This document shows, in pieces, positions 30,562 through 57,169 of a stretch of 64,000 nt of DNA; the first letter of the stretch is position 1; every line of letters begins with the position of its first letter. The notes beneath the pieces are model-generated. The model made no database searches, was not told where the DNA came from, and worked only from the letters and a program-made list of their open reading frames with translations. Source of the DNA: Marsupella aquatica (Eukaryota > Plantae > Marchantiophyta); assembly GCA_973895155.1 (NCBI GenBank), contig CCZZQB010000054.1:6182-70181 (forward strand), written 5' to 3'. The position numbers and the translations under genes were made by a program.

Positions 30562-30921
30562 ACAGGAATCACTCGGCCGGTTAAGTGGGTAAAGCAGGAA
30601 GGCACCCTAGGAACACCTTAGTATAGTGACAAAACAAGGAAAATATAAACAATTAGGGGCAACCATGGAACCCGGGCAGAGGCCGAAGGTAAGGCTGAGG
30701 GTGAAAACCCGATTAGGGTTAGGGCGCGTTAAGCGTCGGCGGCTAGGAAGGATCAACGGGAAGAAGGACCGGCAGAGGAGAGGGGTAAGGAGCGCTTGCA
30801 GGAGATGGTGGCTCATTTGCGAGCACGAACTAGGCAGACGACTACGGGAGGCCAACTACTGTCAGCTGCTTAGGCAAGCACTCGGGAGAGAGTAGATACC
30901 GATGATCAACCTAAGGAGGGT

Positions 30922-33024: not shown

Positions 33025-34289
33025 AAGAAGCGGTGGCTTTAGAGAGAAGCAAGAAGGACGAGGTCATTCGGCGGCTTAGGAGGATGGAAGCCGAGATTGA
33101 AGATCTAAGGGCGGCCAAGAAAGCCCAAGATGAACTGCGGATTAAACGACATGAGCTGAACATCATGCAGGGGCAGTTGGACGCCGCGCAGGCTGATAAT
33201 CAGAATATCAAGGATAAACTGACTCAGACGCAGGAAGAGTTGGCCGACACGATCAAAGAAAGGGAAAAGTGGAAGCAAGAGCTAAAGAATACAGAGGAGG
33301 CCCACATAACAGCCAACAGCCGGGCCATGGCGGAGACCCAAAGAAAGGAATGGGCGTTGAAAGGGGAGCTCGAGAAAATCCGCGGAGCCCTTGAGCAGAA
33401 GGAGGTCGAGTTAGGGAAATCCTATCAAGGGATTATGGCGCTGCAGCAGGAGCTTGCGTCCCTGACGGCCAGCTTCAAGGCCGACCTAAGGGAGAAGGAC
33501 GAGATGCTCGAACAGACTTACGCCAAGATGAACCAGATGGAGTCTGTCATCATTGCAGAACTCGACAAGGAGCTAAGAGCAACCCAGGAGGAGAGGGCTA
33601 CCTTGAAGAAGGAATTGGAGGAAGCCCACAGGGAGCAGGAGGAGGCCAAAAACGAGCTGGAGGGGGCACGTAAGGACCTGGATGAAACCCAAGAGGAGTT
33701 GGAGGAAATCACGAGGAAGATGGAAAACCTACAGCGGCGGGCCGACAACCAAACAGAGCGGCTGAAGAAACAAGCCGCAGTATTTAAAGGCTTAGCTGCA
33801 GCAGGTCCATCTCCTGTTGGGACAAACCAGTTACCAGGGGTGGTAATTGCCGAAGGACAAGCCGCGCCACCTGCACCAATGCCGGAGGTAAGTGGGAAGG
33901 GGAAGGGACCAGCTGCCGAGCCACCAACGAAGAAGAAGCGGAAACCTTCAGGGTCAAGGAGTAATACGACTTCACAGGCCGTGGTGATCAAGGAGGTAGA
34001 CCCAGCACCGACCCCAGACAGGGTCACGGCTAAGGATCCAACTACCCTAGGGGAAGGGGAGGCCGAAGCCGTGGGAGTGGCTGAAGCCGAAGCCGTGGGA
34101 GTGGCTGAAGCCGAAGCCGTGGGTATTACCGAGGCCGGTGTCGAGGCCGAAGCCGAAGGTGGACCCAGTCAGGCCGATGGAGAGTTGACTCGGTCAAGGG
34201 CAGGTAATCTGTCAGTAGGCGGGCCAACGGCAGTGGCTAAGGAGGAAGTATTGGGGGCGTCCATTGAGGATCCACCACCGGTGTCGTGA
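32937..34289 (+). CDS. ORF2 copy in the D 3' LTR (450 aa)
   Basis: Protein identical to 22052-23404. Confidence 0.7.
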   Translation: MWGTCARHLWRGVGGRTLFHREQLEKHQLEEAVALERSKKDEVIRRLRRMEAEIEDLRAAKKAQDELRIKRHELNIMQGQLDAAQADNQNIKDKLTQTQEELADTIKEREKWKQELKNTEEAHITANSRAMAETQRKEWALKGELEKIRGALEQKEVELGKSYQGIMALQQELASLTASFKADLREKDEMLEQTYAKMNQMESVIIAELDKELRATQEERATLKKELEEAHREQEEAKNELEGARKDLDETQEELEEITRKMENLQRRADNQTERLKKQAAVFKGLAAAGPSPVGTNQLPGVVIAEGQAAPPAPMPEVSGKGKGPAAEPPTKKKRKPSGSRSNTTSQAVVIKEVDPAPTPDRVTAKDPTTLGEGEAEAVGVAEAEAVGVAEAEAVGITEAGVEAEAEGGPSQADGELTRSRAGNLSVGGPTAVAKEEVLGASIEDPPPVS

Positions 34290-35940
34290 CGGTGCAAGGG
34301 CGCCGTTCCTTTTAGGGAGGGCGAACGTGGAGGGAGGAGGCGTGAGTGGGCAGGGCGGGCACGGATCTCCACGTTTAGGATTAGGATCAGAACCAGGAGC
34401 GGCCCTGACACTTAGCTTAGTGGGATTGCGGTCCCACTGGTAGGAGCAACACTTGTGCTCCTGCCTTGCTGTACATAGGTAGATTCGGGCAAGTAGATTA
34501 CTGTCAGGTAGATTAGGCTTACGATGCAAAGAATGGCGGATCCACTACCAGGATAAGTACCTGGGCAGCGGGGAGCTCATGGCCTCTTCTTTAGCAAGTT
34601 TTTAGTTTGCACCAGCCGGGCTGGGATCAAGTAGTACGAGAAGCTCTCGGTTAGTCATACAGTGACCCTTGTGTATATTCATGTTTCCTCATGCCTAAGA
34701 GCTGAATAGAGTTGGCCTCACGGCTTAGTTCGCAGAACTTGTGTATGAGATGTACTGTTTGTATGGCAAGTGCATGGTATGACTCAATCAGAATGAGTCA
34801 ATTTGCTATTTGTGTGTCGCATTAACTTGTGTGAAGAGTGCCCACATCAACAGAAGGAAGGAAAGTAAGCAGGGGAGTGAGAGTTGGATGTGTCGAGCTG
34901 AGAGAGGTCTTAGCGGCTTAACCAAGCCTATTGGGGATCATTCCGGCGGCGGAATCCAAACATACCTAACAAGACGGAGGGGAAGACAGGGGAAGACAAG
35001 GGAAGGCCTATATTAGGCCGGCTACGTATCTCATGACCCGATGAAGGATCTGTCCAGTATATGTGTGTAAAATGTTAATAGTAGTAGTAGAAGGTTAGCA
35101 GCGTCCCATGCCGCTAAGCCGCGGAAACGGCCTCGCCAAGCACGAAACCTGCGGGAATTGGCTTGAGCTGGGGGGTTTCTTGGGGTTAGGGAGCCATGGG
35201 ACGCACCACAGTGACCAAGGAGGTAAACCCGGCACCAACCACAGGCAGGGTCACGGTAGAGGATCCAACTACCCTAGAAGGTGGGGATGGCAAAGCCAAG
35301 GCCAAGACACTCAGTGATGAAGCCGGGGTAACGGATCCACCACTAGAGCATGTCGGGGAGGCCGTAGCCGTATTAGAGGCCGTGGTCGATGCTGAGGGCG
35401 AAGCCGAGGGTGGACCCGGTCAGGCCGCGGGTGAGTTGACTGGGTCTGGGGCAGGTAATCTGTTAGAGGATGGACCTACGGTAGTGGTTGCGGAGGAAGC
35501 ATTGGGGGCGTCCATTGAGGATTAGCCACCGCTACCATGACGGTGGTGGAGGGCCACTCCTTTTAAGGAGGGCGGACGTGGAGGGAGGAGGCGTGAGTGG
35601 GCAGGGCGGGCTCAGATCTCCAAGTTTAGAATTAGGATAAGGACCAAGAGGCGGCCCTGACACTTAGATTAGTGGGATTGCGGATCCACTGGTAAGAAGA
35701 ACACTTGTGCTCCTGCCTCGCTGTACATAGGTAAATTATAATTAGGATAGATTAGGCTTACACTACAAGGAATTAGGCAGATCCACTACCAAGATAAGTA
35801 CCTGGGCAGCGAGGAGTTGAGGCCTTCTTCTTTAGCAAGTTTTTAGTGCACCAGCAGGGCTGTGAAACTTGTGTATATTCATGTTTCCTCATGCCTAAGA
35901 GATGAATAGAGTTGGCCTCAAGGCTTAGTTTGCAAATCTT

Positions 35941-36289
35941 CATTGAATGGTAGCAATTTTATAAATTTTGTTCCCCCACAAAAAGCCCCACGGGAAGGGC
36001 GCACAAACAGGCAGCAAGGCCAAGAAGGCAACATCCAGTAGGGTAGCAGCCCAATCACACCGACACAACAAAGGGCCAGGCTTCCGCCTCAACCCAACAC
36101 CCCCGCGCCCGGACAGAGCACAACAGGGAGGGCACCCCTAAATACACAAAGAAACACATCACACGGCCAGTCCAAATTTGGAGAGCACGGCCAAGAAAGC
36201 AACAAAAGGCAGCCAACAAGCGGCCCATCACCCAAAAGAGATCAATCTCCCACCACCGCCAACCCAACCCCTACGAAGACTGTCAATCC
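35941..36289. other. 349-bp insertion in F flanked by a 14-bp near-perfect duplication
   Basis: AGTTTGCAAATCTT (35927-35940) and AGTTTGCAGATCTT (36290-36303); the insert is absent from the D LTRs. Confidence 0.75.
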
Positions 36290-36758
36290 AGTTTGCAGAT
36301 CTTGTGTATGAGAAGTACTGTTTGTATGGCAAGTGCATGGTATAACTCAGTCAGAAGGAGTCATTTTGCTATTTGTGTGTCGCATTAACTTGTTTGAAGA
36401 TTGCCCGCATTAACCAAGAAGGGAGTAAGCAAGGTAGTAAGAGTTGGATGTGTCGAGCTGAGAGAGGTCTTAGTGGCTTACCCAAGCCAATTGGGGATCA
36501 TTCTGGCGGCAAAATCCAAACATACCTAAAGGAAGACCAAGAGAGGAGGCCAAGGGAAGACATAGAAGAGGCCGACTACGTATCTCATGACCCGATGAAG
36601 GATCTGTCCAATATATGTGTATAAGTTGTTTGTAGAATGAGGTTAGCAGCGTCCTATGCCGCTAAGCCGCAGAACCGGCCTCACCGAGAGCAAAACCTAC
36701 GGGAATCGACTTGTGCAGGGGGGTTTCTTGGGTTTAGGGAGCCATGGGACGCACCACA

Positions 36759-37328
36759 GGAGGAAACTCAAATACAACATTTCCATTGTACTTGTTTGGC
36801 AAACAAGGAACTTGCTCGTGTTGGAAGTCCCCTGCCGCGATAAATCTTGACAGTTCACTATGTCCCGTGGCCTTGAGTAAGGCATCCATTGCACTCCGCC
36901 GGTAACCTTATGGACACCTCCGGAGGTGGCCACCGGTTCACTCTTAAGGCAACTAGAGTCTGGAACTTTGTACTTCACAGGAGGATTGGGCGCAACATCA
37001 TCATCTTCACTCTAAGATATTTCAACAACCTGGGTCAAAATGTTCTCAACAACCGATTGAAGAGGAGTAAGTTGGACATGAAGCGAGTAACAAAGTTCGA
37101 CATTCATGTGCCAGAAACGTATTCCTCATCCACATCAAATGTCGCAGCACGTTCAAGTCCTGCACTCATTGACTCCTCATGAACAATCGACGCAATGTCA
37201 TTGATTCTCAAATCGAATCTCCCACACAGGTAGGTTTCGCTTACTTGCTTGTAAGTATCATAAACTTGCATGGGAACCTTGACGACGTCCCCAGTACAAG
37301 CACGTGTAATAACAATTGAGCGCAACAT
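36759..37328 (-). pseudogene. MULE1 transposase N-terminal fragment, interrupted by F
   Basis: SIVITR...YLCGRFDLRINDI and RRSAMDALLK...HEQVPCLPNKYNGNVVFEFPP match the 47227 ORF. Confidence 0.85.
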
Positions 37329-38349
37329 TGTAGATGAATGAAGTTAAAGCCACTGGAAATTCATGCACTAAGCCAATCCCGGCCGTATGGGTTGCTTATA
37401 CCACCCCTTCAAAGAGCACCGGCCGTTAAAAGAGTTGTTTCAATACGACAGAGAACACGCACAACTTTGCGTCCGTTGAAATCATAAATGAAACATTTGT
37501 CCTTTTTGCCCGACAAGTGCGGGTGTCAGGAATATTTATAACATGAATACGACTAGATAATATCCTATACAAGTGCGTCCATTTCATTAGCGTTGGGCGC
37601 TACCTAAAAAGCATCTGAATAACAATGACTTAATTTGAAAAGTCTTGTGACTAGTGCCTGGCGCTAGCATAATCATACACGCAATATTCATGAATTGTTT
37701 TTGCAAAATATTCCATTACAAGCATTTTTAAGTTCAAATACAGTAAATTGGTACTAGCGCTGCACTCGGCGCTAGTATTGATACAATATACTTAATACCT
37801 TAATATCAAGTAAAGTTTAGTTACTATGGTTGAGAAGAGTACATTTGGAAGTTTGTTAACAATATCTGGTACTAAAATGCAACATTAATCAAATGATTCA
37901 CATGGCTAGCGCTGGGCGCTAGCATTTGTTCACCAATAAGTTTTTGAATTTAGTGGTCACTTCTTTGTTAGCGCCTGGCGCTGGCATTGCATGTCTGTCT
38001 GAAAGGTGTGGAGACAACGGTAACATTTAACGGTCACTATTGTTTAGCGTGATGATCACGCCAACATTTTAGCGTAATTCACATTAATACTTCTCACGAT
38101 TTCTAAATTGTCGCCTTCTGTCACGGATAAGTAATATTGAATCTCGTCGTTCACAATGAGTAACGTCTGATTACAAAGAGGGGAATAGAGCTCATTGATC
38201 GGATATAATACGGATGCAATTGTTAATATGGTACGAAGAATTGGTAATCGGTCGTGAGAATTCTGTTCATAGACCTTTCATCATAAAGACGATGGATGCA
38301 GTCCCCTCCTCGTCGAGGGGGTATAGTGTGGTTGGGGATTGGGATCGTG

Positions 38350-39488
38350 GGTATTGCGAGTCTTCTGAGTCTTCATTCTCTGGTTCAATGTATACACGTC
38401 GAGTAACAAGGTCCACCGCATCGCTTATTCCAATCTTTGGTATTTCATTTGCCAAGCCAGTGAGAATGAAAATGGAGAATCTTGATACATTTGCAATTCA
38501 AGATGTTTCATTTTCGGAGATCGATCTTATTTCAAAACACGTCATGTCTTTTGGGAAAGATTTCAGAGGTTTTGACAAAGAGCCTTCACAAATTCCGCTA
38601 TGTCGATTGGTGCATATGGAGGTTGTCCGAACTCTGCAGAAAGATAGCTCTTCCATCGACAAGCTGAAAGACTCTTTCCGTAGCATGGGATACAATTCTT
38701 CAATTGGAATGAGGTTTATGTTCAGCCCACTGATGCTGAGGGAGTGCTTCTCACCTGTACTCAAGAAATTTGTGATAGTTGGGATCCAATATGGACATCT
38801 GAGAATGAGAAATTTGAGGAAGAATATGCTGCCGACCCAGATTTTCTGGTTTTGAAGGATAGAATGTTCTCCATTTTTTACGGGAACCATAGGCTTTACT
38901 CATGGACACTTGTCACATAGGAGAATCCCCAAAACCCAAAGTACCACCCGCGAGTGCTTTGTACAGTTTTCAATGGGGACAAGGGTTCACTGATAGAAAT
39001 CAAAGTTGCTATGCACATCGTAACCAGTAAGAGTTCTCTTTTGTGCATAACTTTGTGAGTCATTGTGAATTGTTAATTCTTTCTAGCATAACTTTCTGAG
39101 GCCATGTTTTACAAGCGCCTGACGCTGCTTATATGTTCTCATTTTGTTCTTTTATTTCAGGCTTGGACAAGCCGTTGTGGAACCCTCCTGGATCCTAGAC
39201 GTCGATTGAATTAAGTGGATCTTGATGCACGACCTGGAGTATTATAGTAAGCTCATCGACCCAACGAATTACAAGAAGTTTGAGCAGATCAGGATGAAGA
39301 TGCAGAAGGAATCCTGGTACACAAAGAAGATGCCTCAGGAGGCTCTTGTGTACATTCTATGTCAAGATAAGATTAAGTCGAATTCAAACCAGTTCAAGAT
39401 TGACATGGAGTCCGTTGCGGCCCTCGGTACCCCTTGGTCGGTCGAGGAGGTTTCCAAAAGGCATGCTGTTATGATGAAGGAAGCAACG
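38350..39488 (+). pseudogene. MULE1 passenger gene, ParB-like N-terminal part (2 exons, truncated)
   Basis: IPLCRLVHMEVVR...KLKDSF...GY, then in another frame RMFSIFYGNHRLYSW at about 38880. Intron at about 39026-39160 in the same position as in MULE2; stops and frameshifts present. Confidence 0.75.
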
Positions 39489-40687
39489 AGGTGTTTACAA
39501 AAGGCAGGAAAACAGGAAACAGGCATTCATAACAGAAACTGGTAACAAGGAAAAAGACTGGTAACAGGAAAATTCTAGTCTCAAACTTTTGAAAAAAATT
39601 TCTGGTAGCACCCGGCGCTGGTAAAAATAGCGCCGACGGCGAGGTTTTTTTAAAAGACACCAAAAAAACAAACAGGAGTAAATATAAGAAACTCGTACCG
39701 GTAGGAACTCTCCACGGTTATTGCTAGCGCCGAGCGCTGTGAAGAGTCTATAATTTGTACCAATTGCACTCTCGGAGGATATTTAATGAAGGGGGTTATG
39801 AAATGTTTGATCTCGGAATGCTATTTAAGTCAATTATAATTAACCAAAACCTTTCAGTAGCGCCTGGCGCTACTACAGTAATCCCAGTTGACAACCATCG
39901 TCTATTCTAGCCTCCTCCCGATCAGGGTCTTTCCAGAAGACATCTAGCTGCAAAGATCCATGACTATTCCCGCCAGTTCACCTAATACCATAAAATCAGA
40001 CGGAAAACAAAACATTCATGCAACACAGCCCGGAAAGAATCGATCCACACCCAAGAACCCTTAGAAAATTGGGAAGCGCCCGACGCTAACCAATATTGCA
40101 CCTGAGAACATGTCTTCACAACTCAAACTTCAAGAATCTGAAATAAAATATAATAGTGACAGTATGTTTGAGGAGCGCCTGGCGCTAGTAAAAGTTGAAA
40201 GGGCTTAAAATCAGCCAATTCATCGAAATGGTTACATATTGAAACATTAAATGATGTATTTGAAGAAAACCCCATTGCTACCTATAAACTACCAGATGTT
40301 TTTGATGCGGAGCTTTCAGATTTGTCTGTGGACTCGGCTTTGTCATCAATGTACTTGCTTCGGGAAACATCATCTATATAAGGGTTGCTCATGAACTTCC
40401 TGTCTGCTCCCCTCTGAAGACGTAGATCTTTTGTTTCCCAACAAAAAGTTCTAATTTTGTCAACCCTCCTAGCGGCATTTTCAGCGTATGAGGGAAAAAC
40501 AAACGGCTTCTCAGGATTGACAATTATATTCCTAGCTAGTCTCCTCCGGAGTTGGAAATGCTTCCTCAGATTCCATTCTGACCTGATCCAGTAAAACGGA
40601 AAAACATATGAGTTTAGGAGATAAGAGAGCAAGAACCCAGAATTGTCAACAACACTTGAAAGGATAAAGAAGCTTACTGGAAGAACA

Positions 40688-43600
40688 TTACTCGTCTGAT
40701 TCTTCGCTCTTCTCCGAAGAATCTTCCTCCTGTGTTTTCTCTGTGTCATCTCCGACGTCTCCAGAGGTACCTTCCTCTTCGTCATAATCAAAATTGAGAA
40801 CAGATCGGAGCCTATCTTTCTTTTTGCAACCACTTAAATTGGTCGGAACATGCCTGGGATCAAGAAGTTCTAAGAAAACCCTTGATGCGGTCTCAACAAA
40901 CTCACGCCTATTTTCCAACCCAATCACAAAATGACCAGAAAAATCACCAGCAATGAATGTGCTTCCTGAACCTACAGTCCAGTCAAGGACAATATCTCCA
41001 GGAAGAGTAAAAAGCTCTATCACTGACTGCATAAAACCAACCGAAAGACAGGCGTTCCCAACAAAATCCAACTCCGGGCAATGATCTGTCTTCAAGGTTT
41101 GGAGCCCAATCAAGTTAGAGATCGAAGGATCTTCACTTATTGATAGAGGCTTAAACCTTCGATCCTTTGGTACCTTTCCTTTTGAAGAAGTTCGACAAAA
41201 TATGTCTAGCCTAAGGGTAAATACCTGCACGCATCACACACGTTTGGCTCAAATTATCAACCGATGGGTAATGTTCGAGAACTACAGCAAAGACTAAATT
41301 AGCACCGGGCGCTGTCATGAGGTTTCCATCCTAAAGGAGGAATCCTCATATTTTGTGAAGGAAGTTGAAACCTATTTTACTTCTAACTTGGGCAAGTTGA
41401 CTTGACTTGAGCTAACTTGACCAAGGTGAAGGAGGAAGTAGAGTTATGAGGGTCAAGGTAGGGATGAGGTCAAGCCTACCCACCCTTGTTACTATTGTGG
41501 GGTATGTTTTTCATTTGTGACCAGCGATTAAGTTATCATTTGGCGGATTGGCGGAATGGAGGTTGCTTGCTCAACAAGCAAGGTATTTAGGGTTTTGGCA
41601 ACATGGTGACCAGGTTCATTGAATACATGGAGGAGGTGACCAGGTTCAAGGCATGTAAGAGGGTTTGGTCCAAGTGCATCAGTTTTGTGAGATTTGGACC
41701 AGATTCAGATTTTTGTGTTAAATGGACCAGATTCAATGTATCTACTTCAACGGTGGATCTTGGTTTTGGTTAATGGATGGTTTGGATTGAAGGTGGAGAT
41801 GTGAGTTAGGGCTTGGTGGAGGTCGTGGCTTTTTCAAAAATGTCGAAGCTCATTTGGTTTACAAGTTACTAAGGAGGGGTTTTTTGGCTCATTTTTGGCC
41901 GTTTGATCTAATTGGTGTGAGATTGAGGGCTGTGATTCAACGAGGATTAAAACCATAAGTGGAGGGGCTTGTGGGTGCTCTGGGCCTTCCCACGTGGGTA
42001 CTAAAGGAGGAAGTTCGAGTGGCCAAGAGTTCGGAGGTTAGATGCTGCTGAAGTGCTGCCGTTTTGCCATTTTGGAGTGTTAAGTCCCATTTTTAGTTGT
42101 AGGAGCGAACCTCTTGAGGGGAGCTCGAGCATGAGGCATGAGTGAAGGGGGAGCCCTCCTCCTTGGCCATGGCCTTAGGATTTTGAGGGTAGGAGATGTA
42201 GAGGCAATTTTGTGAAGAGATAGATGGAGTAGAAGCTTTGAATGTGAAGAGATTGAGTTTTGTGACGGTTTTTCTAGGGATTTGGAGAGAGGTTTCGAAT
42301 GTAGGAGAGGCTGACTCGAAGCCTTAGGAAGGAGGTAGGATGTGAGTAGGAAGTATAAGGGGCTTGCATGAGAGATTGCCCACAAGAAGGCATACTCGAA
42401 GTAGGTTTGTTGCTTCAAGTTTTGAGGAGAATGGACTTGTAGGAGATTTTCGAAAGCTTAGAGGAGATGAGACCTAATCTTGTTGAAGCTTGGGAGTCTT
42501 GCATTAGAGATGGCTCACTAAGAAGGCCTACTCTCTTGTAAACTCCTTGACTTGAAGCTTCGAAAGTAGATTTGGTTGATAGAAGGAAGTATGAGAGAAG
42601 GAGACTAGGGTTTTGAAGCTTGGATAGGCTATGGAGGGATTTTGAATGCTTGGTTGATGATTAGACTTGGTGATGATTCATTTTTTCTAGGAGGGTCTTG
42701 CTTGTGACCCATGTTTTTACTTGGAGACCATGATGCTACATGTGCCTTCTTGCTATGCATTTAGAGGAGAGGTATCCTCGTTTTTGAGATGTGTGTTGAT
42801 GCCTTGCTTTGGCTATGAGTGATGGAATGGTTAGAATGAATGTCTTCATGCCATTTTCGAATGTTGTTGTGAGCTTGAAGGTGTTTTTGAAAGTAGATGG
42901 GTTGGATGAAGGTACTTTCAAAAGTAGTTATTATGCATGAGGGAAGTTGCAAGAGTAAAGAGTGAAGGCATTTTTGATTGATGGAATGGGTTGTTTGTGG
43001 ATTGTACTTGGTGGTTCTACTAGAGGAAGGGACTAAGGTCAATTCCATGTTTGTTAAGGAGTTTGTTGACCAACCCTAGGTCATTTTTCGAAAGTAGTTT
43101 TCCATGTTTCAACAGTTGGATGTTTGAATGGTGCATAGAGATCCCTTGCATACCTTTGGATGTCCCACTTGTCTTAGCCACAACCAAGAGTGACCCGTAA
43201 CTTGACCACATTGATGTAAGCTTGAACTTGTGTACCTTAGAGGGTTGCAAGGGATTGTGTGCAATCAAGTGTTGGAAAAGGAATGGTGACCAATTGAATG
43301 TTGGGCTTAGACTTGTGAGGATTACATTGGGAAGCTTGAACTAGTTATTTTGATTGTGATTGGATATGAGTATGTAAATGGCTTGAGTTTCGAAAGCATG
43401 CTTGCTTGCTTGTGATGATGTGGATGAAAGGTTAGGGTAGATACTTTGTCTTGTTTGCAACCGTTTCCTATCTCTCAAGCAGCCATACACCCTGCGTGTC
43501 CCTTGAGGCCCTTTCCCACCTCTTTGCTTATCCTCAGGACAGCGCTAACAATAAACAAGAGATGCAACGATCTATACCTGAATATTGGTGTTTGCTCTGT

Positions 43601-46600
43601 ACATGGGCATAGACATGATGACATTGTGAGAATTGACACAATGGAACTTTTTTGACTGCTGGCATGCTGAAATGACCTGCGAGACCTGGTCATGGTCATC
43701 TAAATACAAGATTGCAAGCATGCCATCATCAGAAAGGAAAGGGTCCATCGCTTTGAAGAAAGAACTGGGAACTGTGTGGTCTGGTACATTCCACTTTGGA
43801 ACCCGACGGTCCATGAGCGTAGGTTTAAGTCCAGTAGGAAGATAGATGAATCCTGCATTGACACCAAACGATCTTTCTTTTCCTCCTCTGATTACTCCCT
43901 TTACTCGGGAACCCGACTTGATTAAGTCCCGTCCCCATTTCTCTGCATCAGTCATCCAATCTGGTTTCGCTGCTTTGTTGAAAGCAGTATCAATAAATTC
44001 TTGGATACTTGTTTCCACCATGCAATGCCTAGAAGATTTGCTCTTGAAGGTTCCCACATCTCTCTGAACACCAGTTCCAGCGGCATCATCTGGGGAAAAT
44101 TCTCCAGCTTGAATTGCCCTTTTCTTCTTCTTCTTTGTATTGGTTGCATCAAGAGGGACGATCTCTTTCGCTTTGTCAATTGGAGTTACTGGGTCTGACT
44201 GGGCACCGGTATTGGCTTCGGAAGGCTCCAGAGTGGCATCTACTTTTGTTTCATTGGTTGCAGCATCAGACTTTCTCCCACCTAAAGGAAAAAGAGTAGA
44301 ATTTATTCAATGCTAAATAATAGCACCAGTCGCTGTCCAAACCAATTGAAAAAACAAACCAATAGACATAGTCATATAGCAGCGCTTGGCGCTAACCAAA
44401 ATGTGAAGCTACAAGCTGAATGACAACTTAAGTTTTTTGGCGGACCGCGTTGAGGTACTCGGTGCCGCAGCTTTGGTTTTTGCTTTGGCTCTGGGTTTAC
44501 GACTTCGATCAACATGAACAACCGTAGTTTTGCACACCGATTGCAATTCTGCCGCCGACTTGCTCACATCACCTTTGATTCCTGCTTCATGTCGGACACA
44601 AACTTGGGAGGGACCTGAGACTTTGAAAGCTTATGAAATGCGTCTTTCTCAATGTCTCTAAATGGAGAGTCCCATCTATCGGTGTCCAAATACCAAGGAC
44701 AATGAATTCTCTCCCATTCTGACAGTTTCCTTGGTGGAAGACACCCTTCAGCGGGATACATTGAATACACATCGGCCAGTATGTCTCCTTCGGGAACAAC
44801 GATCCACTTTTGGAAAGCAGCAGGGTATGCCCAAAAGTAATTTGGCTTCACAATCTCCATATGCATGAAGAAATGGTACAGGTATCATTTGGCCCTCTTC
44901 TGATTCTTGAGGGTGTAGTCAGCCTTGTCGGGATACTTGGAAGGCCACATTGTATTAAAAAACTTGCCTTTCACAGCGTCCCCAAATTTCTTGAAGTCAT
45001 TTGAGACTATTTCAATAAGCGATTCAATCGACTCACACTCCCACTCCTGCAACCGATTGGCGTGGACTATATCATTGACCTGGCGTAGGGAGGTTTGTAG
45101 CAAACCAATAGCGATTCCCTCCACAGTGTTCCAAGTTTTCTAGGTATGGCACCGTTGCTTCACTGGATCGTCATTAACGCTCTGTGGATGGAAGAATTGT
45201 TTCCTCAGCTCCGGTGTACAATGGGCAACCAGAAGGGTACTCCTCAGCTTGGGGTCGAGGGCAAAGACAGCGGTAACCAATCTTGCTCGATCCATTGTAC
45301 AGACAATTGCATCCGGATTCTTCTCTCTCTTATTCTTCTCTGTGAGGGGGTACATCTCAGCACATGTCCGCATGAAATCCTCAAAAGTGGGGCTTAACAG
45401 AGGAGTGATTTTTGACACCTTTATCGCCCAATCCTTTGTTGCCTCCATCATCGCTGCATGTCTTTTTGAAATCTCTGCGGGAGACCAAGGTGTACCCTGA
45501 GCGGCAGCATGTTCCAGATCCATCTTAAACTGTCTAGAATTAGACTTGATCTTATTCTCACACAAGATGTACAGAAGCGCTTCTTGAGGCATTTTTTTCG
45601 TATACCACGATCCCTTCCGTGTTTTCTGCATGATCTACCCAAACTTCTTGAAGTTTGCAGCGTCAATGATAGACTTGTAGTAATTCAGTTCATTCGAGAG
45701 AATTTGGTTGATACGGTCTGCATCAAGTATCCAAGAGAGTTCGACCACTACCTGCCCAAGCCTGAAAACGAGAGAGGGAGTCAGTAGCGCCCGACGCTAG
45801 TGAAACACTATGATCATAGATTAGAATAGAAATATATTGGAAGAGACACTTATTGGTTAACAGTGTGCATTGCCGCCTCAATCTCGATCAAGGACCCCTT
45901 TTCTCCCTTGAATATTGTGCACTGGACACGAGGATGGTATTTCATATCATCTGGATTCTCCTTTGTGACGATGGACCATGCGTAGAGTTGATGGTTTCCA
46001 TCAAACACAAAAAACATCTTATCCTACAGGACGCAGAAGTCAGGGTTGGCAGCGCATTCCGCCTCAAACTTTTCGTTCTCTGCGACCCAAATTGCATCCA
46101 GGAAGCACGAATCTCTGGCGTGCAGATCTGGACTTCTCCATTGGAATCTGTTGGTTGGACGTAAAACAGCATGCCGATCTTAGGATTGTATCTTGTGCTC
46201 TGAAAGGAGTCTTTCAGCTTCTCTATCGAAGGGCTTCCCTTCTGTAATGTCCGTACTACTTCCATATGAAGTAGTCGGCACATTGGAATCCTTGGCGGAT
46301 CCTTGTCATGTCCTCGGAAATCTTTTCCAAATGACATAATGTGTTTGGAGATCACATCGTAAACAGTCAGCAACGTCTCTCCAAAGACCTCCATAGCAAA
46401 CGAATTAGAATCATCCATCTTCCCTCTCTTGCTATTCGGGAACAATACAGCGGGTTGTGCTTCAGGGGCTCGCGAAGCAGTGGATCAAGTCACTCGACGA
46501 CTATACACAGATCCTGAAAATGAGCACTCAGATGTTTGCGAGGGGACGACCTCTCTGTGTCGGTTTCCACTAAAGCATTGAGAGGAGGATAAGGCAGGGT

Positions 46601-46680
46601 CCATTGCTCGCACAAGGGCGAAGGAAGCACTGACGACCACCGCGCTCTTTCCGTACTGCAAACGGAAAAAACCCGTCACA
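40688..46680 (-). pseudogene. Spliced gene: ParB-like domain plus beta-class amino (N4-cytosine/N6-adenine) DNA methyltransferase-like domain
   Basis: Predicted exons about 46680-45854, 45761 to about 44420, 44281-43578 and 41224-40688. KMFFVFDGNHQLYAW at about 45990; FIYLPTG and FLSDDGMLAIL (motifs IV and VI); FMQSVIELFTLPGDIVLDWTVGSGSTFIAGDFSGHFVIGLE (motifs X, I, II). Contains stops and frameshifts. Confidence 0.75.
41313..43541. mobile_element. Solo LTR I (2229 bp) inside the last intron of the methyltransferase gene
   Basis: Ends TGTCATGAGG...CCTCAGGACA; 4-bp TSD GCGC at 41309-41312 and 43542-43545. Its removal restores a 120-nt GT-AG intron and a palindrome. Confidence 0.85.
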
Positions 46681-47226
46681 CAGCTTCGATCGTACTGTAC
46701 TTAACATGGGAAATAAGAAGAATCTAGAGCACAGAGCATGACATATACGCTAAGGAAACTGAACTCCTAGCCTGGATCTATGACACATGTCGTTATCTTA
46801 TTTGACAACACATAAGGGGATCAATGTATTGAGGGTCATGCAACCTATAGTTACCGTTGAATATGACCGTTGAAAGGAAAACCTGACGTTAGATGGACCC
46901 CAACCTTTTGGATTGTTATGAATAGCGCCAGGCGCTAAACATAAATTGACTTTGCATGGACCTCTACTTTTGCAATGTTTTTAATAGCGCTTGGCGCTAT
47001 TCATCATCTGATATTTCTAGAACAAAAGGGTTCTTCCTAAATAACGTTTTTTGTTAATGTCGTTGATTGTAAATGACGTTGATATAATGACAAAATACAT
47101 ATATGGTGTTAGAGGATTGTCTTATTATAATGGCTTTAGGGAACTGTTAGTCAGGATCGATAACAGTCCTCGTCGGTGGAATTTTGATTCATAATTTTCC
47201 TACACTCATTCGCTTCCAAGGCTTCT

Positions 47227-50200
47227 GTGATGTCTCAGTCAATCGTAGTTACCCGTATGTCCACCGGTGACATTGTTTCCATTCCAGTGTCTGTGGCCGA
47301 AAGGTACAGGCAAATAAGTGAGGTTTATCTTTGTGGAAGGTTTGATTTGCGCATGAATGACATAAAGGCAATCGTTCAGGAGGGAACGGAAGCCAATGAC
47401 TTTGAATCTATCGCACTTTTTGATGTCGATGACGGGGTGAGATTTTGGCACCTTAATGTTGGGTTGCGCTACTCCATTGTTGTTCGGGAACCAAATCAAG
47501 GAGATTGGCAATCCCCTCAGAGGGATCCGGTGGATGTAGTTGCTCTTTCCGATAGTGATGATGAGGAGCCACCAAGGATCCCCTTCGTGGAGCCTTCGGC
47601 GCCTGAAGTGGTCTTGGTCAAAGAGGAGATGCCATCGTCGCAATCCCATATTGTATACCGGAGAAGTGCAATGGACGCGCTGCTCAAGTCAACTGGGTCC
47701 AACAAACTTTCAAGGTTCATTTCGGCTGGAAACTTCCGGCATGAACAAGTACCTTGTTTGCCACCGAAGTACAATGGAAATGTAGTGTTTGAGTTGCCTC
47801 CATTGTCGGGAATTCTTTCAAAAGGATCCCGTCTACAGGACATGGACCAAACCAAGGATTGCTACATCTGGACTAGAATATTTCCTACCACTACAAACGT
47901 GCAGCCCAAGAAATACTGGGAATTCGGTAAAGTCACTTGTACTGGATTTATTGAGTGCAGGAATAAAACTTGTGACTACTTCCGCCGAAGAAGAGGAGGA
48001 ATGCAAAGGCATGGGCTGGTACCCCAAAACTTGGAGGCTCTCACCGTGTTGGATCGTTCATTGAGCAGGGTGGAGTTGTTTGTCATTATTGCCAGCAGCT
48101 CCCTTTTTGTGTAGAGGCATGCTCTGCAAGACTGTTTTATATGTATCCTCAAGTTCTGCTTGACTCAAATACCTGTAGTCACATGTCTTGCCTTGCGATT
48201 CATACGGGCACCCACAACCATCCTTGTCGTAAGGTATTTTCCCGGAGTGCGGAAAAGGTAGTTGAAGATGTCATAAAAAAGAAATTGGAAGGCAATCCAA
48301 CTTGGACGCCTGCCAGGATTAAAAATGTAGCGACAGGATCTTTTGTACAGTCTTTGTGTGAGAGCCTAGGTGAGATTGAAGATATCGAAGAGACAGAGAT
48401 TTTCCAGTCTCTAATGGTAGTTTCTACTCCACAGAAGTTTGCATCTCTTTTCAGGAGTGTTAGGCAGGACCAGAAAGGCCGTGGAGAGTTGGATTTTCTT
48501 GTTCGGTATCAAAAGAATATCAACATGCCTTTTCTACACAGGTACATCCTTCCAGGTCAAGGATCTCAAGAAGACAAACCTCACATATTTAAGATGACTT
48601 CCAAAGGCCATGGGTCTGGGGTGGATCTTTTGCGGCAAATGCAACCTGGAGGGATGCTTGAAGGTGCCTGGGTAAGCTTCGATGTCATGAAATGAATGAC
48701 CAAGGATTGGGTGACTTTTAGCGCACACGTTTACGATCACAATTACCGCGCATTGTGTACAATATTTACTTGCGAGCTAAAAGCTGAGGACACGGCGTCA
48801 TTCGAGAAGGCTTGGAGATTAATGATTGAGGTTTCCAAAGAGAATGGGTTAGATAATCCAACCATTCATGGCTTCATGGCAGACAATGCCCAAGCCGGAT
48901 GGTTAGCAGTCCGAAATGTTTTTTTTGGAGGGCACCCAAACCCTGAACGAGAGAGGACGGACGCTTTTCATTTTTACCAAGCTTTTCATCGCCATTCTGT
49001 TGAAGGAGTGTTGGAAGAGAAGCAGGCGAAACATCAAATGCTATGGGATAAATTACGGAATGCACCGACATTTGTAGAGGCTTACCGACTTTCAAGAGAG
49101 ATTGACCTATGGTGGTAGTCGGGTAATTGCTTACTTGGAAAGAAGTGTTTACAAAAGATAGCAAACAGGAAACAGGATTTAATAACAAAAACTGGTAACA
49201 AGAAAAAAAACTAGTAACAGGAAAATGGATGGAAATTTTTTTTGAATTTTTTTTTGAATTTTTTTTTTGAAAATTTTTTTTTTGAGAAAAAAAAAGTTTT
49301 TTTTTTGGTCAACCAGTTTTTTTTGCTACAGCCCAAAGCTAGCCAAAAATGTTGCATTGTTAATTTTTTTTGGAAATAACATGTTTTATGAGACATTTTT
49401 AAATTGTCATTTTTCCTGGTAACAGTGATTTTTTCTTGGTAACAGCATTTTAAAAACAGGAAAAAAAAATCTTGTTTACCTGTTTCTTGTCTTCGTCGCT
49501 ATACCCCCTGGAAAGCTCCGAATGCTTCAAAGTTGGATATCGTGGTGGGTCGTGCGTTGGAGGCAGTGGGGAAATTTTATTCGCTTGGTGAGTAATAGCG
49601 CTTGGCGCTAGTAATATGCAAGTCAGATTGCTTTGTAGAAGTACATTTTTCAGATGACATTCCTCAACATTCCATCCAAAGAATCCAAATAATGTAATTG
49701 ATTCTCAAATATTGACCTATTTATTTTCATAAACATGTGATTACACAATAATATTGATGGTTTTGTCTAAATGTTCTGCCTAGCGCCTGGCGCTAGTATG
49801 TTTTGCGGATTCTTACCAGTGTTTATGCTTTGTCGTTCTAGGACAAAAGTGCTGAAGAAGGCGCTAGGATTCCTAACTATACCGGGTCAGAGTCTGTTCA
49901 TGCGGGAATGAAAGCATGGGTAATGAAAAAAAAAGTTGGGCTCTTTGAGGCATGTGAAATGGATCAGAATCGAGCTATATCGCAGGTTGCAGCATATACC
50001 ACATATCGGAAAGGATTGAGTAGAGGAAGAGGTCCTACAATATGGGAACTGGCTTTCCGTTCAGCTGACCAGGCAGGTTCCCCAGAGCTGTTCGAGGATG
50101 CGATGAACATGCTCCTCTCCAATGCAGCTGAGTTTGACTTGGAGAGAAGCGTTCCTCTCAACGGAGATGTTACAAAGTCTGTCAAGAGGAAAGGACCTGC

Positions 50201-51365
50201 AACTGGGATTGTCTCGCCACAAGACTCCCACCGACATGATAAAGTCCTTATCACATCGCCGAATACCAGATCAATCAAGCGTAAAAATCTGCACCACACA
50301 ATGTTTGCTTCCATATCGGAAGAAAAACCTGATGACATTTCCGTTGTCAATCTCTCAGGAAGTGATGATTCGAGGGATGTAGATCGTGATGATTTCAGTA
50401 CACCGCAGAGTCGACATCAATCACGTTCAACACAATACCCACAAAGCGCCCCCGCTGTACTTCAGCAGACATTGCTCCAATCTCCAGTTCTTGAAACAGA
50501 ATTCATGCAGGGTTCATGGCATCTGTGTCAGACATCAAGATTTGGGGCCGGTCCACAGTGCAACACGTCATTTGGCGGTAGTTCCGAGAGAGACGAGGGT
50601 CGAAATAGAGTGAAGAAAGTTGGGTTCCCCTCATCAAACAATGTCATTGGAATTGTTGTCAAAGGACAATGCATGTTCAGGGGGGAACCCATAGCCAAAA
50701 TGATATGGTTCTGCCCAAACAACACATGCTATCGGGGCCGTCCCCGCCGTGGTGTAGTGAACCTGCCCTCCGTTCCTGATGTTCTTCCTGTTATAAAAGG
50801 AACAAATGTTTCGGAAGCTGAGATGAAGTATCTTGTTGACCAGGGAATACCTATAGCCCGAGGAAGAGACGGTCCTCTACCTCCACCATCACTTTTCGAG
50901 CTTTGAATCAATGTAAACTTATTTCCAGAGAGAGTGAATCTTTTGGAACCCACTGTTCGTCTCCAAAGTCGGAATGGAAAGAACACGGTTCCTCGATCGA
51001 CCTTGACCCATGGTCACATGAAGAGGATTGAATCTGCAAGAAAAGAGACCATGTCCGTCTAGGGACAATGGGATGTTTCTATTGGGAACTCATGGGGGAA
51101 GCAATTCAAAGTACAAACACATGAGAATCTAAGGACGCCGAATAGTTACTTTGTGCAGATTTGTATTTTCCCGACTTGTTCTTGTGAGGATTTCTATCGT
51201 CGACATTCTCGCAGACATCCATATATGCCTTGCAAACATTTGTACTGGGTTTTCCATACCGTTTTCAAACTAGACGTTGAGGAATCTACTTTGACCAGCC
51301 AACCAATTCTCACAGTTGGAGAAGTCCGACTGATCTTGGAGAGGGAGAATGCTCATGGTTTATAG
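47227..51365 (+). pseudogene. MULE2 transposase (Cys/His WRKY-GCM-like region, MULE DDE domain, SWIM zinc finger)
   Basis: CTGFIEC..C and HTGTHNHP; catalytic-type motifs FDVMK, FMADN, AFHFYQA (CxxH equivalent), SESVH; SWIM CSCEDF...CKHLYW. Intron at 49588-49841; several stops. Confidence 0.8.
49143..49506. mobile_element. 364-bp non-autonomous insertion in the transposase, with a 9-bp near-TSD
   Basis: CTTGGAAAG (49134-49142) and CCTGGAAAG (49507-49515). Removal restores ...LGKLRMLQSW; its left end resembles 39489 onward. Confidence 0.6.
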
Positions 51366-51549
51366 AGAAGTATATATTTGTCCTATACTTGAAACGGTTA
51401 TATTAGTTTTTGTCGTATTACAACGATATAGTTTTATGTTAGCGCCTGGCGCTAGGATGGAAGTCTTCCTTATTATCATTTACTTCATTGTAATCCTATC
51501 ACTACAAATGATATTTTAAATTTGTGTTTCCTGTTAGAATATATTTAAC

Positions 51550-53025
51550 TGTGATGCCTAGACAGGAATCACTCGACCGGTTAAGTGGGTAAAGCAGGAA
51601 GGCACCCTAGGAACACCTTAGTACAGTGACAAAACAAGGAAAATATAAACAATTAGGGGCAACCATGGAACCCGGGCAGAGGCCGGAGGTAAGGCTGAGG
51701 GTGAAAACCCGATTAGGGTTAGGGCGCGTTAAGCGTCGGCGGCTAGGAAGGATCAACGGGAAGAAGGACCGGCAGAGGAGAGGGGTAAGGAGCGCTTGCA
51801 GGAGATGGTGGCTCATTTGCGAGCACGAACTAGGCAGACGACTACGGGAGGCCAACTACTGTCAGCTGCTTAAGCAAGCACTCGGGGAGAGAGTAGATAC
51901 CGACGATCGACCTAAGGAGGGTATGAGCAACGTCAATCAAGCGGCACATTTTTGGGGATGCCTGTTCGAACGGGCAACTGAGTACATCAAGACTTACGAG
52001 GACGAGGAGTCAGAAAGGGCAGCTCGAGAACGGCAGGAGCTCGTTCGATTGTGGGAGCTGCACAAGACGGCTTTCTTAGGAGGCGAACTCATCAAGGACG
52101 AGTTCCTGTGGACGCCTACTTCCAATCAACTCGACGATCTTCTGTTTTGCAAAGACAGCGTCGTCGGCATCCGAGAGGCCATCAAGAACTGCAACGACAT
52201 ACACTGGGAATTAAAGGGTAGCACGGAAAGGTGGACCCGGGCAACGGTGCTAGGAGAAACCTCCACGGCAGCAGAGATGAAGAGGAAGGGAGCCGTCAAC
52301 GATGAAGCCACCCCGGCAAAAAGAACGAGGTCGGCGGCACCAAAGAAGCCAGCCGAGCAGCAGAGCAGGAGGCAGGGAGAAGCCGAAGAGGAGGAGGTCG
52401 ATCCCATCAAGGCCATTCCAACCAGGGATGACACCTGGAAGGGCTGGGCGGCAACCCTACCGGTGGAGGTGCAACTACATTTTGCACGGGAGGAGGATGC
52501 ATGCTTTACGGCCATGCAGACCAAGAAGTACCAAGGCTTCATGGCCGGATCCGGCTTGGAGGCCTTTGTAAGATTACCATGGCTGAAGCCGGAGGTACCG
52601 GAGTCAGACCTATTAGAATTCGTGGGGTCATGGGAACCCGAGACCAATTGCACGAGGATATATGGGAAGGATTTCTATCTTACTCCCAAGGTAATTGCCG
52701 AAGTGTTTGGCTTGCCGATGGGCAATAAGACCAAAGTTGATACCAGGAAGACCTTGCCTGACAAGGAGTTCCGGTCGTTCCCCGGGCCATCAACGAAGAA
52801 TGGCTTCTTCCGGAACACCTGCACCAACCCGCACATAGGAGAGATGATCGACTTCTTGCGGGTGACCATGCATTGTAACTTGCCGAGGGCAGAGATCGGC
52901 AAGGCATAGGTCTATCTGGCAGAAAGGCCAGACCCAAGCCGGGACTACAACGGGTACCTCCTCAACCAATTGAAGAAGATCTTAAAGGAGGAGCAGCAGG
53001 TAATCGGCATGGGGAGCGTGTCGCG
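51550..53025 (+). mobile_element. Element H: third D-family LTR, interrupted by G at 53026
   Basis: Starts TGTGATGCCTAGACAGG, is about 99% like the D LTR by eye, and breaks off at GTGTCGCG. Confidence 0.92.
51665..52909 (+). pseudogene. H copy of the LTR ORF (upstream ORF fused in frame to ORF1; premature TAG at 52907-52909)
   Basis: ORF 51626-52909; an extra G in CTCGGGGAGA relative to D; CAG>TAG. Confidence 0.8.
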
Positions 53026-53386
53026 TGTGACGGGTACCCCGTCACGGGAAGTCACACATAACTGGTTGCAAAGGCCGATACCTTGTTAATAGTCAATGTA
53101 AATAAGCCATTTTTTAATTTTTAGTTAATTCCGTCATTATAGGTTGATGATGCCCCAGGTGACTTTATATTCTTTCTCTCATAATAGTTCTAAGATTTGC
53201 GGCGACCTAAGTGGGCAAATATTTTGGGACCTTGAAACTAGCCAGGACCAGCCCCATAGGACTTACCGTTTTGCTTCAAGAGCTATTGTTGAGACCCCCA
53301 TTGCAAAGTCAGGAGAGGGGGGGGTTTTTTTAAATAAATCCCTCCTCAGGAGGGCGAGTCCCATTAGTGGCCGTCCGAGAGAAAGA

Positions 53387-53760
53387 GGGGCTGCCTCGCG
53401 AGCCCATAGGGCTGCGTGCCCGGGCGATTAATGGGGCTCCGCGAGCTGAAGGGGCTGCCTCGCGAGCCCATAGGGCTGCGTGCCCGGGCAATTAATGAGG
53501 CTCCGCGAGCTGAAGGAGCGCAAGCGAGCGGGGGGGGGGAGTTAAAGGGCCTCCCGCGAGCTGGGAGGATCACGCGAGCGGGGGGGAGTTAAAGGGCCTC
53601 CCGCGAGCTGGGAGGATCACGCGAGCGGGGGGGAGTTAAAGGGCCTCCCGCGAGCTGGGAGGATCACGCGAGCGGGGGGGAGTTAAAGGGCCTCCCGCGA
53701 GCTGGGAGGATCACGCGAGCGGGGGGGAGTTGAAGGGCCTCCCGCGAGCCGGGAGGAATG
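53387..53760 (+). repeat. GC-rich tandem repeats in the G LTR (two units of about 65 bp, then about five 47-bp units)
   Basis: 47-mer GCGAGCGGGGGGGAGTTAAAGGGCCTCCCGCGAGCTGGGAGGATCAC. Confidence 0.9.
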
Positions 53761-54179
53761 GCCGCGCGCCCTGCATAGGGCCGCGCGCAGGAGGACGCAA
53801 GGGTAAGGCCCGAGAAATGGGCCGGGGCGCATGGCGAAGGCGCCAGGAGTTTTTTCGGTTCTATTTTTTTTCCTTCCTTTTTCTTTCCCTCTTCCTTTTG
53901 CACGACCCTCTCATTGCCGAAAGCAAAAACGGGGTTCTTCTCTCTCTTGCCGGAAGCTCTCTCCAGATTCTAATTATTTTTGAAGCTCTCTCTTTCATGG
54001 TGGATTAGTGGGGCTTGCTGGCGTCATTCTTCCAGGCATTAGTGGCGGCCGCACGGAGTAGTGACGGGAAATTGAGAGAATTTAAGTGATCGGGCTACGG
54101 GGGCTGTTTCGGGCCAGGGAATTGACATTGCCACGGGTGACGGGATTGGTGATTGAGAAATTGATTTCGGGATGCATGG

Positions 54180-56036: not shown

Positions 56037-57169
56037 ATAGGCGTACGGACGTGGGTGTACGGCCTCCAGATTTCCAACATTTTAGTGGGGGGTCACTCAT
56101 GGGCTTGTTGGGATGAGCTCGCGGAGCTGATTCCAACAAGAGGCGGCGCTCCTCAAACGGAGCCAGGATGAGCAAGTTATGGCCTGGAGAACTTATGTTT
56201 TTGCGGTACGGAAACGGCCATAACTCAGGCGTCTGAAGTCCGTTGAGGGAGCGACTTAGTGATTCGGAAGCAGGAAAAGAAGAGCTATCCAGGGGTGAGC
56301 TCAGGTGTGCACTTGGAAGGGCACCTAGTTTCGGCCATTTTGGGGTGCCTCTCACTTTCAGGGTTCACGTGTACTGTTGGGGCGCCGTCGAAGGCACCGT
56401 CGGCCCCCTTGTTTTGGGTTTAGGGTTTTAGCAGCATGTGTGTGCCGCATGCTCCTCTTCAGTTTAAGGATTTCTCTTAGTGCAAGGTTTTAGCGGCGCC
56501 GCTAGGGTAGCCGCCACCGTTGTGACCCTGTGAGGGGTGCTTTGGTGTGATTTTTCAGTATTTAGGGGGATAGCCCCGAAGTAGTTAGGGGGACTCAGTG
56601 TGAAGTTAGCAAGGAGGGATAGAGTGGAGCCTGAGGAGTTTGAAAGCGTGTTCAGAGTAGTGAGGGGGAGCCATACTCATTGTCCGGAGAGGCAGGAGTT
56701 GAGTAGACGGCAGGAGGCCGGGTTACTCATGCAATGTGTATCGTTTTTCCCAAGAGATATGGATCTGTACATTTGACTTGATGGGCTTTTGTTGTGTGTT
56801 CCTTCTCCCTTTTTCGCTTTCCGAATTGTGTTCTCCCGTTCTATGATTTGAAGAAACTTGCTTGGTTTGAGTCGGCCTTGTGAGTAGGGGTGGTGACAGC
56901 ACTCTTTGGGTGACTCCGAGTGAAGGTGTAGTGGGGTAGTCGGCAGGACTTGATCAAAAGCTGTGGGGTGAGGGTAGTCGGTAGACTTGATCAAAACCTA
57001 CATTTCCGGGAGCGGAAACCAAAATACTCATCCTGGTGTGAAAAGAATCCAAATAGCGTCCCTCCACGACCCCGTAATACGATACCAACGGTTTAAGCGA
57101 AGAAAAGTGCGGTTTGCACGTATTAACCGTTGGAGAGGCAAGTGACATAAGTGTGGTCTTTTGTTTTTG

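Follow-up and report, generated by a model that had tools for sequence, protein, structure and literature searches.

Does a plant DNA transposon carry its own DNA-modification enzyme? This question is raised by a 64,000-nucleotide stretch of the Marsupella aquatica genome (Marchantiophyta; contig CCZZQB010000054.1, positions 6,182 to 70,181), which we call the window and whose own numbering we use throughout. The window has a eukaryotic sequence rich in repeats, among them copia and gypsy open reading frames (ORFs), and at about 36.7-51.5 kb one DNA element is present twice, with the copies oppositely oriented. An initial annotation had read this element as a Mutator-like transposon whose accessory gene encodes a ParB-like plus N4C/N6A DNA methyltransferase. 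We compared the element with related loci of the leafy liverwort Calypogeia fissa (L001, L002, L014 and L015) and of metagenomes. The results showed that it belongs to a family of land-plant DNA transposons that stably carry a selected, intron-bearing gene with a methylase fold.

Structure and decay of the accessory gene

A tblastn comparison showed that the accessory gene is collinear with C. fissa loci and with the metagenome loci L003-L006. It lies divergent from a large transposase-like gene (Table 1). A minus-strand, multi-exon gene in this arrangement had been recognised before, but its interval was wrong: the coding region runs from an ATG at 46604, not 46680, to a stop codon at 40282-40284, and the fifth exon had been missed. 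The exons of L005 sum to a protein of about 1,100 amino acids (aa). By tblastn, exon 2 is matched by a 482-aa ORF of L005 (E 1e-71), and exon 5 by the C terminus of the C. fissa protein P0045 (E 8e-17) and by L005 (E 2e-10). The donor of exon 4, GTAATG, overlaps an apparent stop at 40690-40688 and leads to exon 5. Searching the full library with the exon-3 piece (phmmer) returned 40 proteins, mostly short fragments, three of which are annotated proteins of C. fissa.

We then considered the splice between the two methylase halves, which had been predicted as a canonical GT-AG junction. The donor GT (43577-43576) follows ...ATT CAG and the acceptor AG lies at 41226-41225, giving IQ/VF in phase 0 (a slash marks the junction). 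The C. fissa protein P0008 (453 aa) joins both halves exactly at this point (...DVQ/VQILSL...), and in the metagenome homologue P0040 (locus L003) both halves lie in one uninterrupted, intronless ORF. The splice 43578/41224 is supported by homology, because the annotated liverwort proteins and P0040 join the halves identically. Homologous third introns are 108-273 nt long, against 2353 nt in the window. The insert of about 2.1 kb had been taken for a solo long terminal repeat (LTR), which was not confirmed: no other part of the window resembles it, and a single TG...CA candidate bounded by a 5-bp duplication (41465-43249) is roughly what chance would produce.

The motifs on which the initial annotation was built were all found in place: FIYLPTG and LSDDGMLAIL in the ORF 43572-44057(-), VIELFTLPGDIVLDWTVGSGST...GHFVIGLE in the ORF 40688-41230(-), and DGNHQ and, in the sister copy, YGNHR. 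The ORF 45850-46017(-) contains FVFDGNHQLYAW. The copy is also decayed, as had been stated. Compared with intact homologues, the window gene has five premature in-frame stops, two frameshifts and an enlarged intron 3, and it is therefore a pseudogene; the window copy of the element is dead. The stops at 46487-46485, 45637-45635 and 44887-44885 fall on Arg or Gln positions of the homologues. Judging from these residues, they may have arisen by C-to-T change, the mutation that deamination of methylated cytosine would produce.

The C terminus has a methyltransferase fold with a replaced motif IV

The C-terminal piece of the window matched Pfam N6_N4_Mtase with 33.3 bits (gathering cut-off 26.7; E 6e-8), only over profile positions 163-219 of 221. 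Homologues score 13.6-24.7 bits, under the cut-off, and the other pieces of the window had no Pfam match. A profile of the C-terminal half, searched against PDB, found M1.HpyAVI (4.5e-7), CcrM (9e-5) and MboIIA (2e-3). An AlphaFold model of the homologue P0022, made from a 45-sequence family alignment, reached a predicted local distance difference test (pLDDT) of 74 and a predicted template modelling score of 0.72. In Foldseek, its best PDB matches were CcrM, M1.HpyAVI, M.BceJIV, MboIIA, RsrI, PvuII and rotifer N4CMT (E 3e-11 to 1e-7 over 215-270 columns, covering both halves), and all of the top 40 were beta-class or type III Mod methylases. Aligning seven family sequences with three phage methylases by hhalign gave a probability of 97.3 and an E value of 2.5e-11 over 193 columns, with both halves covered. 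By Pfam, PDB profiles, the AlphaFold model with Foldseek, and hhalign, the accessory C terminus is a circularly permuted beta-class (N6A/N4C) methyltransferase fold with the motif order IV...X-I-II, as initially proposed.

In the hhalign alignment, the phage DPPY block is matched by F-L-P-N in P0022, corresponding to Y-L-P-T in the window (43844-43833); the aligned phage enzymes read DPPY, DIPY and DPPF. FIYLPTG had thus been placed correctly as the counterpart of motif IV, but throughout the family this stretch reads (A/Y/F)-L-P-(T/N) and has neither the Asp or Asn nor the first Pro nor the aromatic residue. In 38 sequences of the family, the four columns hold A12/Y10/F8/C3/S3, L34, P36 and T26/N7. 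None has Asp or Asn at position 1 (three have Ser), Pro at position 2 or an aromatic residue at position 4. The canonical (D/N/S)-P-P-(Y/F/W) tetrapeptide is therefore kept in 0/38 relatives, and the family reads x-L-P-(T/N).

The motifs that bind S-adenosylmethionine (SAM), motif I D-W-T-x-G-x-G and motif II V-I-G-L-E, are conserved in the family. G85, G87, G102, E104 and R106 are invariant in one alignment (A3), and across the family the motif I glycines and G-x-E-x-R are invariant or nearly so. This stretch aligns with phage VLDFTMGSGTT...IGIE in hhalign. Since the SAM-motif residues are kept and motif IV is replaced, conservation extends to the fold and the SAM pocket but not to the canonical catalytic loop. 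The family-wide replacement makes canonical methylase activity doubtful, and on this pattern of residues the accessory protein is probably not a working canonical methylase. The proposal that the transposon carries its own enzyme for N4-methylcytosine (4mC) or N6-methyladenine (6mA) becomes doubtful with it.

The N-terminal DGNHR domain and the middle region

Intact homologues have the N-terminal consensus ...IPLCRL..M..VR.L....I..LK..F...GY...TDEIR.SWD...MFSV(L/F)DGNHRL.SW...KYHPRV. Within it, MFSV(L/F)DGNHRLxSW is conserved in seven sequences, with DGNHR after a hydrophobic strand. The intact homologues P0048, P0049 and P0050 read DGNHR, the main copy of the window reads DGNHQ and the sister copy FYGNHRLYSW at 38879-38893(+). 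We take DGNHR to resemble the DGxHR, DGQHR and DGQQR signatures of the ParB/Srx superfamily.

Searches for ParBc, DndB and DUF262 gave no match in Pfam (window pieces, intact homologues and all sequences of alignment A1), NCBIfam, PHROGs or PADLOC. The best N-terminal profile match, TIGR04172 (DGQHR protein), was not significant (E 0.2). Profile searches of PDB returned nothing, a comparison with E. coli YbdM by hhalign reached a probability of 0.5, and tblastn against phages found nothing significant. The AlphaFold model of this domain, from a 10-sequence alignment, had a pLDDT of 43, too low for its Foldseek matches to carry meaning. No profile or fold test of the proposed ParB/Srx assignment was thus significant, which leaves it at the level of the motif; from DGNHR, a ParB-like identity of the N terminus is plausible.

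Scans of bacterial and archaeal genomes found no prokaryotic source of the DGNHR domain, and the metagenome scan found two short loci only. One viral match (L016) is an ORF with a HipA-kinase-like motif, read by eye, and is probably spurious. The middle region of about 450 aa had no Pfam or PDB profile match and no detectable relatives outside the family.

Linkage to the transposase and selection

We examined the gene order of related loci by tblastn. At the C. fissa loci L001, L002, L014 and L015, the accessory pieces A-H are arranged head to head with the transposase pieces T1-T5, which are on the opposite strand. L015 is partly deleted, its transposase ending after the start of T3 and piece D having no match, and it still keeps this layout. 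The divergent two-gene arrangement is present in 6/6 copies, namely 4/4 C. fissa loci and both window copies, so the linkage to the transposase first seen in the window is kept elsewhere. Several intron positions are common to different lineages, and element-specific palindromes lie inside these introns.

The ratio of nonsynonymous to synonymous substitution (dN/dS) between two liverwort lineages was 0.075-0.10 in the methylase exons, the middle region and the transposase, values that are rough because dS is saturated. As judged from these ratios, the accessory gene is under strong purifying selection.

The transposase-like gene and the Mutator assignment

The transposase-like gene of the window has an in-frame stop at 48693-48695, and its pieces are 27-60% identical to collinear liverwort ORFs. 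A SWIM-like CxCx16CxH in its last piece is conserved between the window and C. fissa; its Pfam SWIM score (E 0.056, 13.4 bits) is under the cut-off of 19.6. Searches of the window pieces and of a 726-aa liverwort ORF for MULE (Mutator-like element) or Transposase_mut families gave no Pfam match at E values up to 10, and PDB profile searches with the transposase gave none. The motifs D...D(NA)...DxxH...SES were read by eye only.

The ends of the liverwort element were located by comparing L014 with L001. L014 (1453-13039) is flanked on both sides by an exact 9-bp target-site duplication, CTCAAATTG, and L001 (2041-12864) by a duplication matching at 8/9 positions. The C. fissa termini form an imperfect 20-bp inverted repeat (14/20) starting GGG. 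The 9-bp duplications, the short inverted termini and CxCx16CxH fit the Mutator superfamily. The assignment to the DNA transposons was borne out by the duplications and short inverted termini of the liverwort copies. The description as a MULE with a DDE/SWIM transposase agrees with the duplications and with a SWIM-like CxCx16CxH, but finds no Pfam MULE match.

Each lineage has its own palindrome

The window contains 18 copies of the palindrome (T)AGCGCCWGGCGCT(A) within 37653-51453 (at most two mismatches), whereas chance predicts 0.67 in 64 kb. None of the 18 falls outside the two element copies, and each lies between homology-defined coding segments. They occupy the divergent intergenic region, the putative accessory introns 1, 2 and 3, the 3' flanks and, in the transposase gene, the interval that separates pieces T3 and T4.

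Every related locus with enough flank (L001, L002, L014, L015, L003, L004 and L005) has a palindrome of its own of about 24 bp, where about zero are expected. The C. fissa palindrome ATTGYT-AGCGAGCTCGCT-ARCAAT occurs in 17, 20, 21 and 11 copies (at most one mismatch), confined to the elements. L004 has 19 copies of ATTACT-AACGAYGTCGTT-AGTAAT, L003 has TAGCGCCGGCGCTA, and L005 has 13 copies of TTGTT-AACGGNNCCGTT-AGCAA, including an array with 75-bp spacing. Per element, there are 11-21 copies in the four liverwort loci and 4-19 in the other loci, placed, as in the window, between the coding segments defined by homology. The outer A-R-C-G is common to the lineages and the core differs, being CCWGG in the window, GAGCTC in C. 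fissa and GACGTC in L004. The terminal repeats of C. fissa contain the AGCGAG half-site of the internal palindrome. Upstream of the accessory gene of L005 (positions 1-1600), the 75-bp-period palindrome array is accompanied by a small RING-finger (zf-C3HC4_3) ORF.

Setting of the two copies in the window

The left end of the main copy adjoins the break of the sister copy at 39491 and resembles the gene-side terminus of the liverwort element, TGTTAC..GGAAACAGGAAACAGG. Its right end is cut or abutted by an LTR beginning at 51550. Inverted termini and a target-site duplication were sought at the ends of the main copy, and none was recovered. A direct repeat of 64 nt (89%), in which AACAGGAAACAGG and CTGGTAACA are frequent, lies at 39510-39573 in the left subterminal region of the main copy and at 49163-49226 in the gap between T3 and T4; its GGAAACAGG motif is also present at the liverwort gene-side terminus.

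Table 1. Coordinates of the element copies, genes and palindromes in the window
Feature	Position	Strand	Remarks
Main copy, decayed	39490-51549		ends approximate; roughly 12 kb; both accessory and transposase genes
Accessory pseudogene, five exons	40282-46604	-	DGNHR domain, middle region, methylase fold, conserved tail
Exon 1	45853-46604	-	N-terminal domain; DGNHQ at 46002-45988; stops at 46487-46485 and 46026-46024; frameshift near 46090
Exon 2	44412-45745	-	middle region; stops at 45637-45635, 45142-45140 and 44887-44885; frameshift near 44600
Exon 3	43578-44186	-	N-terminal half of methylase fold; Y-L-P-T at 43844-43833 in the DPPY position
Intron 3	41225-43577	-	GT...AG; 2353 nt; enlarged by an insertion of about 2.1 kb
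Exon 4	40692-41224	-	motif X, motif I DWTVGSGST (40984-40958), motif II VIGLE, then acidic tail
Exon 5	40285-40578	-	conserved C-terminal tail ..PEKPFVFPSYAE..; outside the interval of the initial annotation
Transposase-like gene, in pieces	47227-51362	+	47227-48111, 47976-48692, 48696-49115, 49842-50903, 51063-51362
Sister copy, partial (truncated)	36755-39491		orientation opposite to main copy
Sister copy, transposase N terminus	37328-36755	-	
Sister copy, accessory exons 1-2	38448-39491	+	YGNHR at 38879-38893
Palindrome copies, first nine of 18	37653, 37908, 37970, 39114, 39607, 39726, 39859, 40075, 40174		
Palindrome copies, last nine of 18	41301, 44322, 44381, 45786, 46924, 46986, 49597, 49782, 51441		

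The surroundings are built of other repeats. An LTR-like sequence of about 1.4 kb occurs in three copies (98.7-99.6% identical) within 19708-36759 and at 51550-53025, in a tandem LTR-internal-LTR-internal arrangement of a gypsy-type element whose second internal region ends at 36759, where the DNA-transposon sequence starts. Directly past the third LTR copy lies a G+C-rich tandem array (53363-53767) with a 47-nt period, units up to 100% identical and a 64-nt pair before it. Two 280-nt arms (56890-57169 and 63721-64000) are 100% complementary, and between them lies a minus-strand gag-pol ORF of 2177 aa; the right arm reaches the window end. The arms are inverted, not direct, which is unusual for an LTR element.

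Discussion

We favour, with a probability of about 0.55, the reading that the transposon encodes an accessory protein with a methylase fold that is non-canonical or inactive and that, together with the palindromes, serves the self-recognition of the element. The protein would be needed for propagation of the element and would act as a SAM- and/or DNA-binding module. The palindromes would be bound either by the transposase or, in analogy to parS, by the accessory protein with its DGNHR (possibly ParB-like) domain. In this way the element would be able to recognise DNA as its own, for assembly of a transposition complex or for escape from silencing. A more specific version, which we put forward tentatively, is that a ParB-type N terminus and a methylase-fold pseudo-enzyme co-evolve with the parS-like palindromes of each lineage, so that the element would be marked by protein binding and not by base methylation. 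Here the palindromes would be kept in the divergent promoter region, the 3' flank and several putative introns.

Several points weigh against the favoured reading. The L-P-(T/N)-G loop is itself conserved, which means constraint and could fit unusual catalysis; the protein is probably a pseudo-enzyme or a non-canonical enzyme and not a standard 6mA/4mC writer. For the N terminus, the profile and fold tests gave no significant ParB match. The palindromes look like candidate binding sites for an element-encoded protein, which may be either the accessory protein or the transposase. With neither a Pfam nor a PDB match, the catalytic nature of the transposase is argued from motifs read by eye and from the target-site duplications. 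L005 has an intact-looking accessory gene and no transposase in the 2.1 kb available upstream, and the same is true of L006. The saturation of dS noted above belongs here as well.

The view of the initial annotation, an active N4C/N6A DNA methyltransferase tethered by ParB and marking the DNA of its own element, draws on the conserved beta-class fold and SAM-binding motifs, on palindrome cores (CCWGG, GAGCTC and GACGTC) that resemble classic methylase targets, and on algal counterparts described as predicted 4mC/6mA enzymes (PMC12477816). We consider it unlikely, given that no family member has the Asp or Asn, the first Pro or the aromatic residue of motif IV and that comparable substitutions mark the inactive methylase domains of METTL14 and DIRS1 (PMC4738411). 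The palindromes might instead be transposase-binding or hairpin sites, with the accessory protein acting elsewhere, for example on chromatin or the host silencing machinery. Other DNA transposons have subterminal repeats that bind the transposase or an accessory protein, and the half-site shared with the liverwort terminal repeats points the same way. This too seems rather improbable to us: the palindromes are distributed over the full length of the element, several putative introns included, rather than only at its ends, and in red algae the inverted-repeat arrays adjoin the gene for the ParB-domain accessory protein (bioRxiv 10.1101/2025.02.11.637652).

There remains the matter of whether the gene has any role in the element at all. 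Plant MULEs often capture gene fragments, and the window copy is a pseudogene, as would suit the incidental capture, in the manner of Pack-MULEs, of a gene fragment from the host or from horizontal transfer. Against this, the divergent layout is kept in all C. fissa loci and both window copies at only 25-60% protein identity, dN/dS is about 0.08, and intron positions are shared between lineages with element-specific palindromes within them. Linkage in all examined copies together with low dN/dS therefore makes incidental capture highly improbable. A host gene merely lying beside a transposon was also considered and fails on the linkage and selection data.

Comparison with known systems

In the literature library searched, no report of such a gene in bryophytes or other land plants was found. 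Its novelty had nevertheless been overstated, as similar accessory proteins are known from algal transposons (PMC12477816; bioRxiv 10.1101/2025.02.11.637652). Dinatale et al. 2025 (PMC12477816, citing Iyer et al. 2011 and Petroll et al. 2025) described the 21.5-kb Ectocarpus element Sola1-1_Ec32, with a ParB-like plus N4C/N6A methyltransferase gene on the strand opposite the transposase. In the layout described, that protein is like ours: about 1,100 aa, an N-terminal ParB-type motif, a C-terminal N6_N4-type domain and the opposite strand. It was proposed to bind and modify its own element. Unlike Sola1-1_Ec32, the present family has a land-plant host, with its closest relatives in a liverwort, and a SWIM-bearing transposase with 9-bp duplications that is not Sola1. 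From red algae, Petroll et al. (bioRxiv 10.1101/2025.02.11.637652) reported Plavaka, Zisupton and Mutator elements whose accessory genes encode an N6-adenine methylase and a ParB-domain protein, with inverted-repeat arrays next to them. Plavaka shares with our family the transposon-borne ParB-type (in our family putative) and adenine-methylase-type domains and the internal inverted-repeat arrays, proposed there as ParB binding sites. Its two domains lie in separate proteins with other partners (PAG2, N6-adenine methylase plus SET; PAG3, ParB plus 2-oxoglutarate oxygenase), whereas here they form one polypeptide, and our palindromes, besides an intergenic array, are also dispersed through putative introns.

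The best sequence and profile matches of the methylase fold are orphan beta-class methylases of phages and conjugative plasmids (for example phage mEp021 gp05; NCBIfam PRK13699), which share with the family the permuted motif order and the WD..IP and DxTxGxG stretches. Unlike the accessory protein, these prokaryotic enzymes are stand-alone proteins of about 230-310 aa that keep DPPY or DPPF; the nearest phage methylases retrieved are 245-313 aa, stand-alone, and none is fused to ParB. Among eukaryotes, Marchantia MpDN4MT1a/b and rotifer N4CMT, 4mC writers of bacterial origin, belong to the same fold class. These are host genes that retain the catalytic TSPPY/SPPY (TSPPY in MpDN4MT1; bioRxiv 10.1101/2021.02.12.428880), whereas the present family is transposon-borne and has lost the motif. 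A parallel to that loss is found in METTL14 and DIRS1, whose disrupted catalytic motif is taken to mark inactive methylase domains (PMC4738411). There too the fold is kept under selection with the catalytic motif disrupted, and DIRS1 is also transposon-encoded, although both belong to different clades of the methylase superfamily; for the accessory protein, a non-catalytic role is inferred.

The class is known from algae, and its occurrence in a land plant of bryophyte type extends it. Transposon-borne ParB-like/methylase proteins are a recently noticed, functionally unexamined class, described so far from algae, and the lineage-specific palindromes of about 24 bp in the elements are new here. 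A Pfam N6_N4_Mtase match in a plant genome is by itself no evidence for 4mC or 6mA. The family offers several handles on the class: the loss throughout the family of the catalytic tetrapeptide while the SAM site is kept, which argues against simple 6mA/4mC writing; the strong purifying selection and strict linkage to the transposase; and the palindromes as a candidate DNA target.

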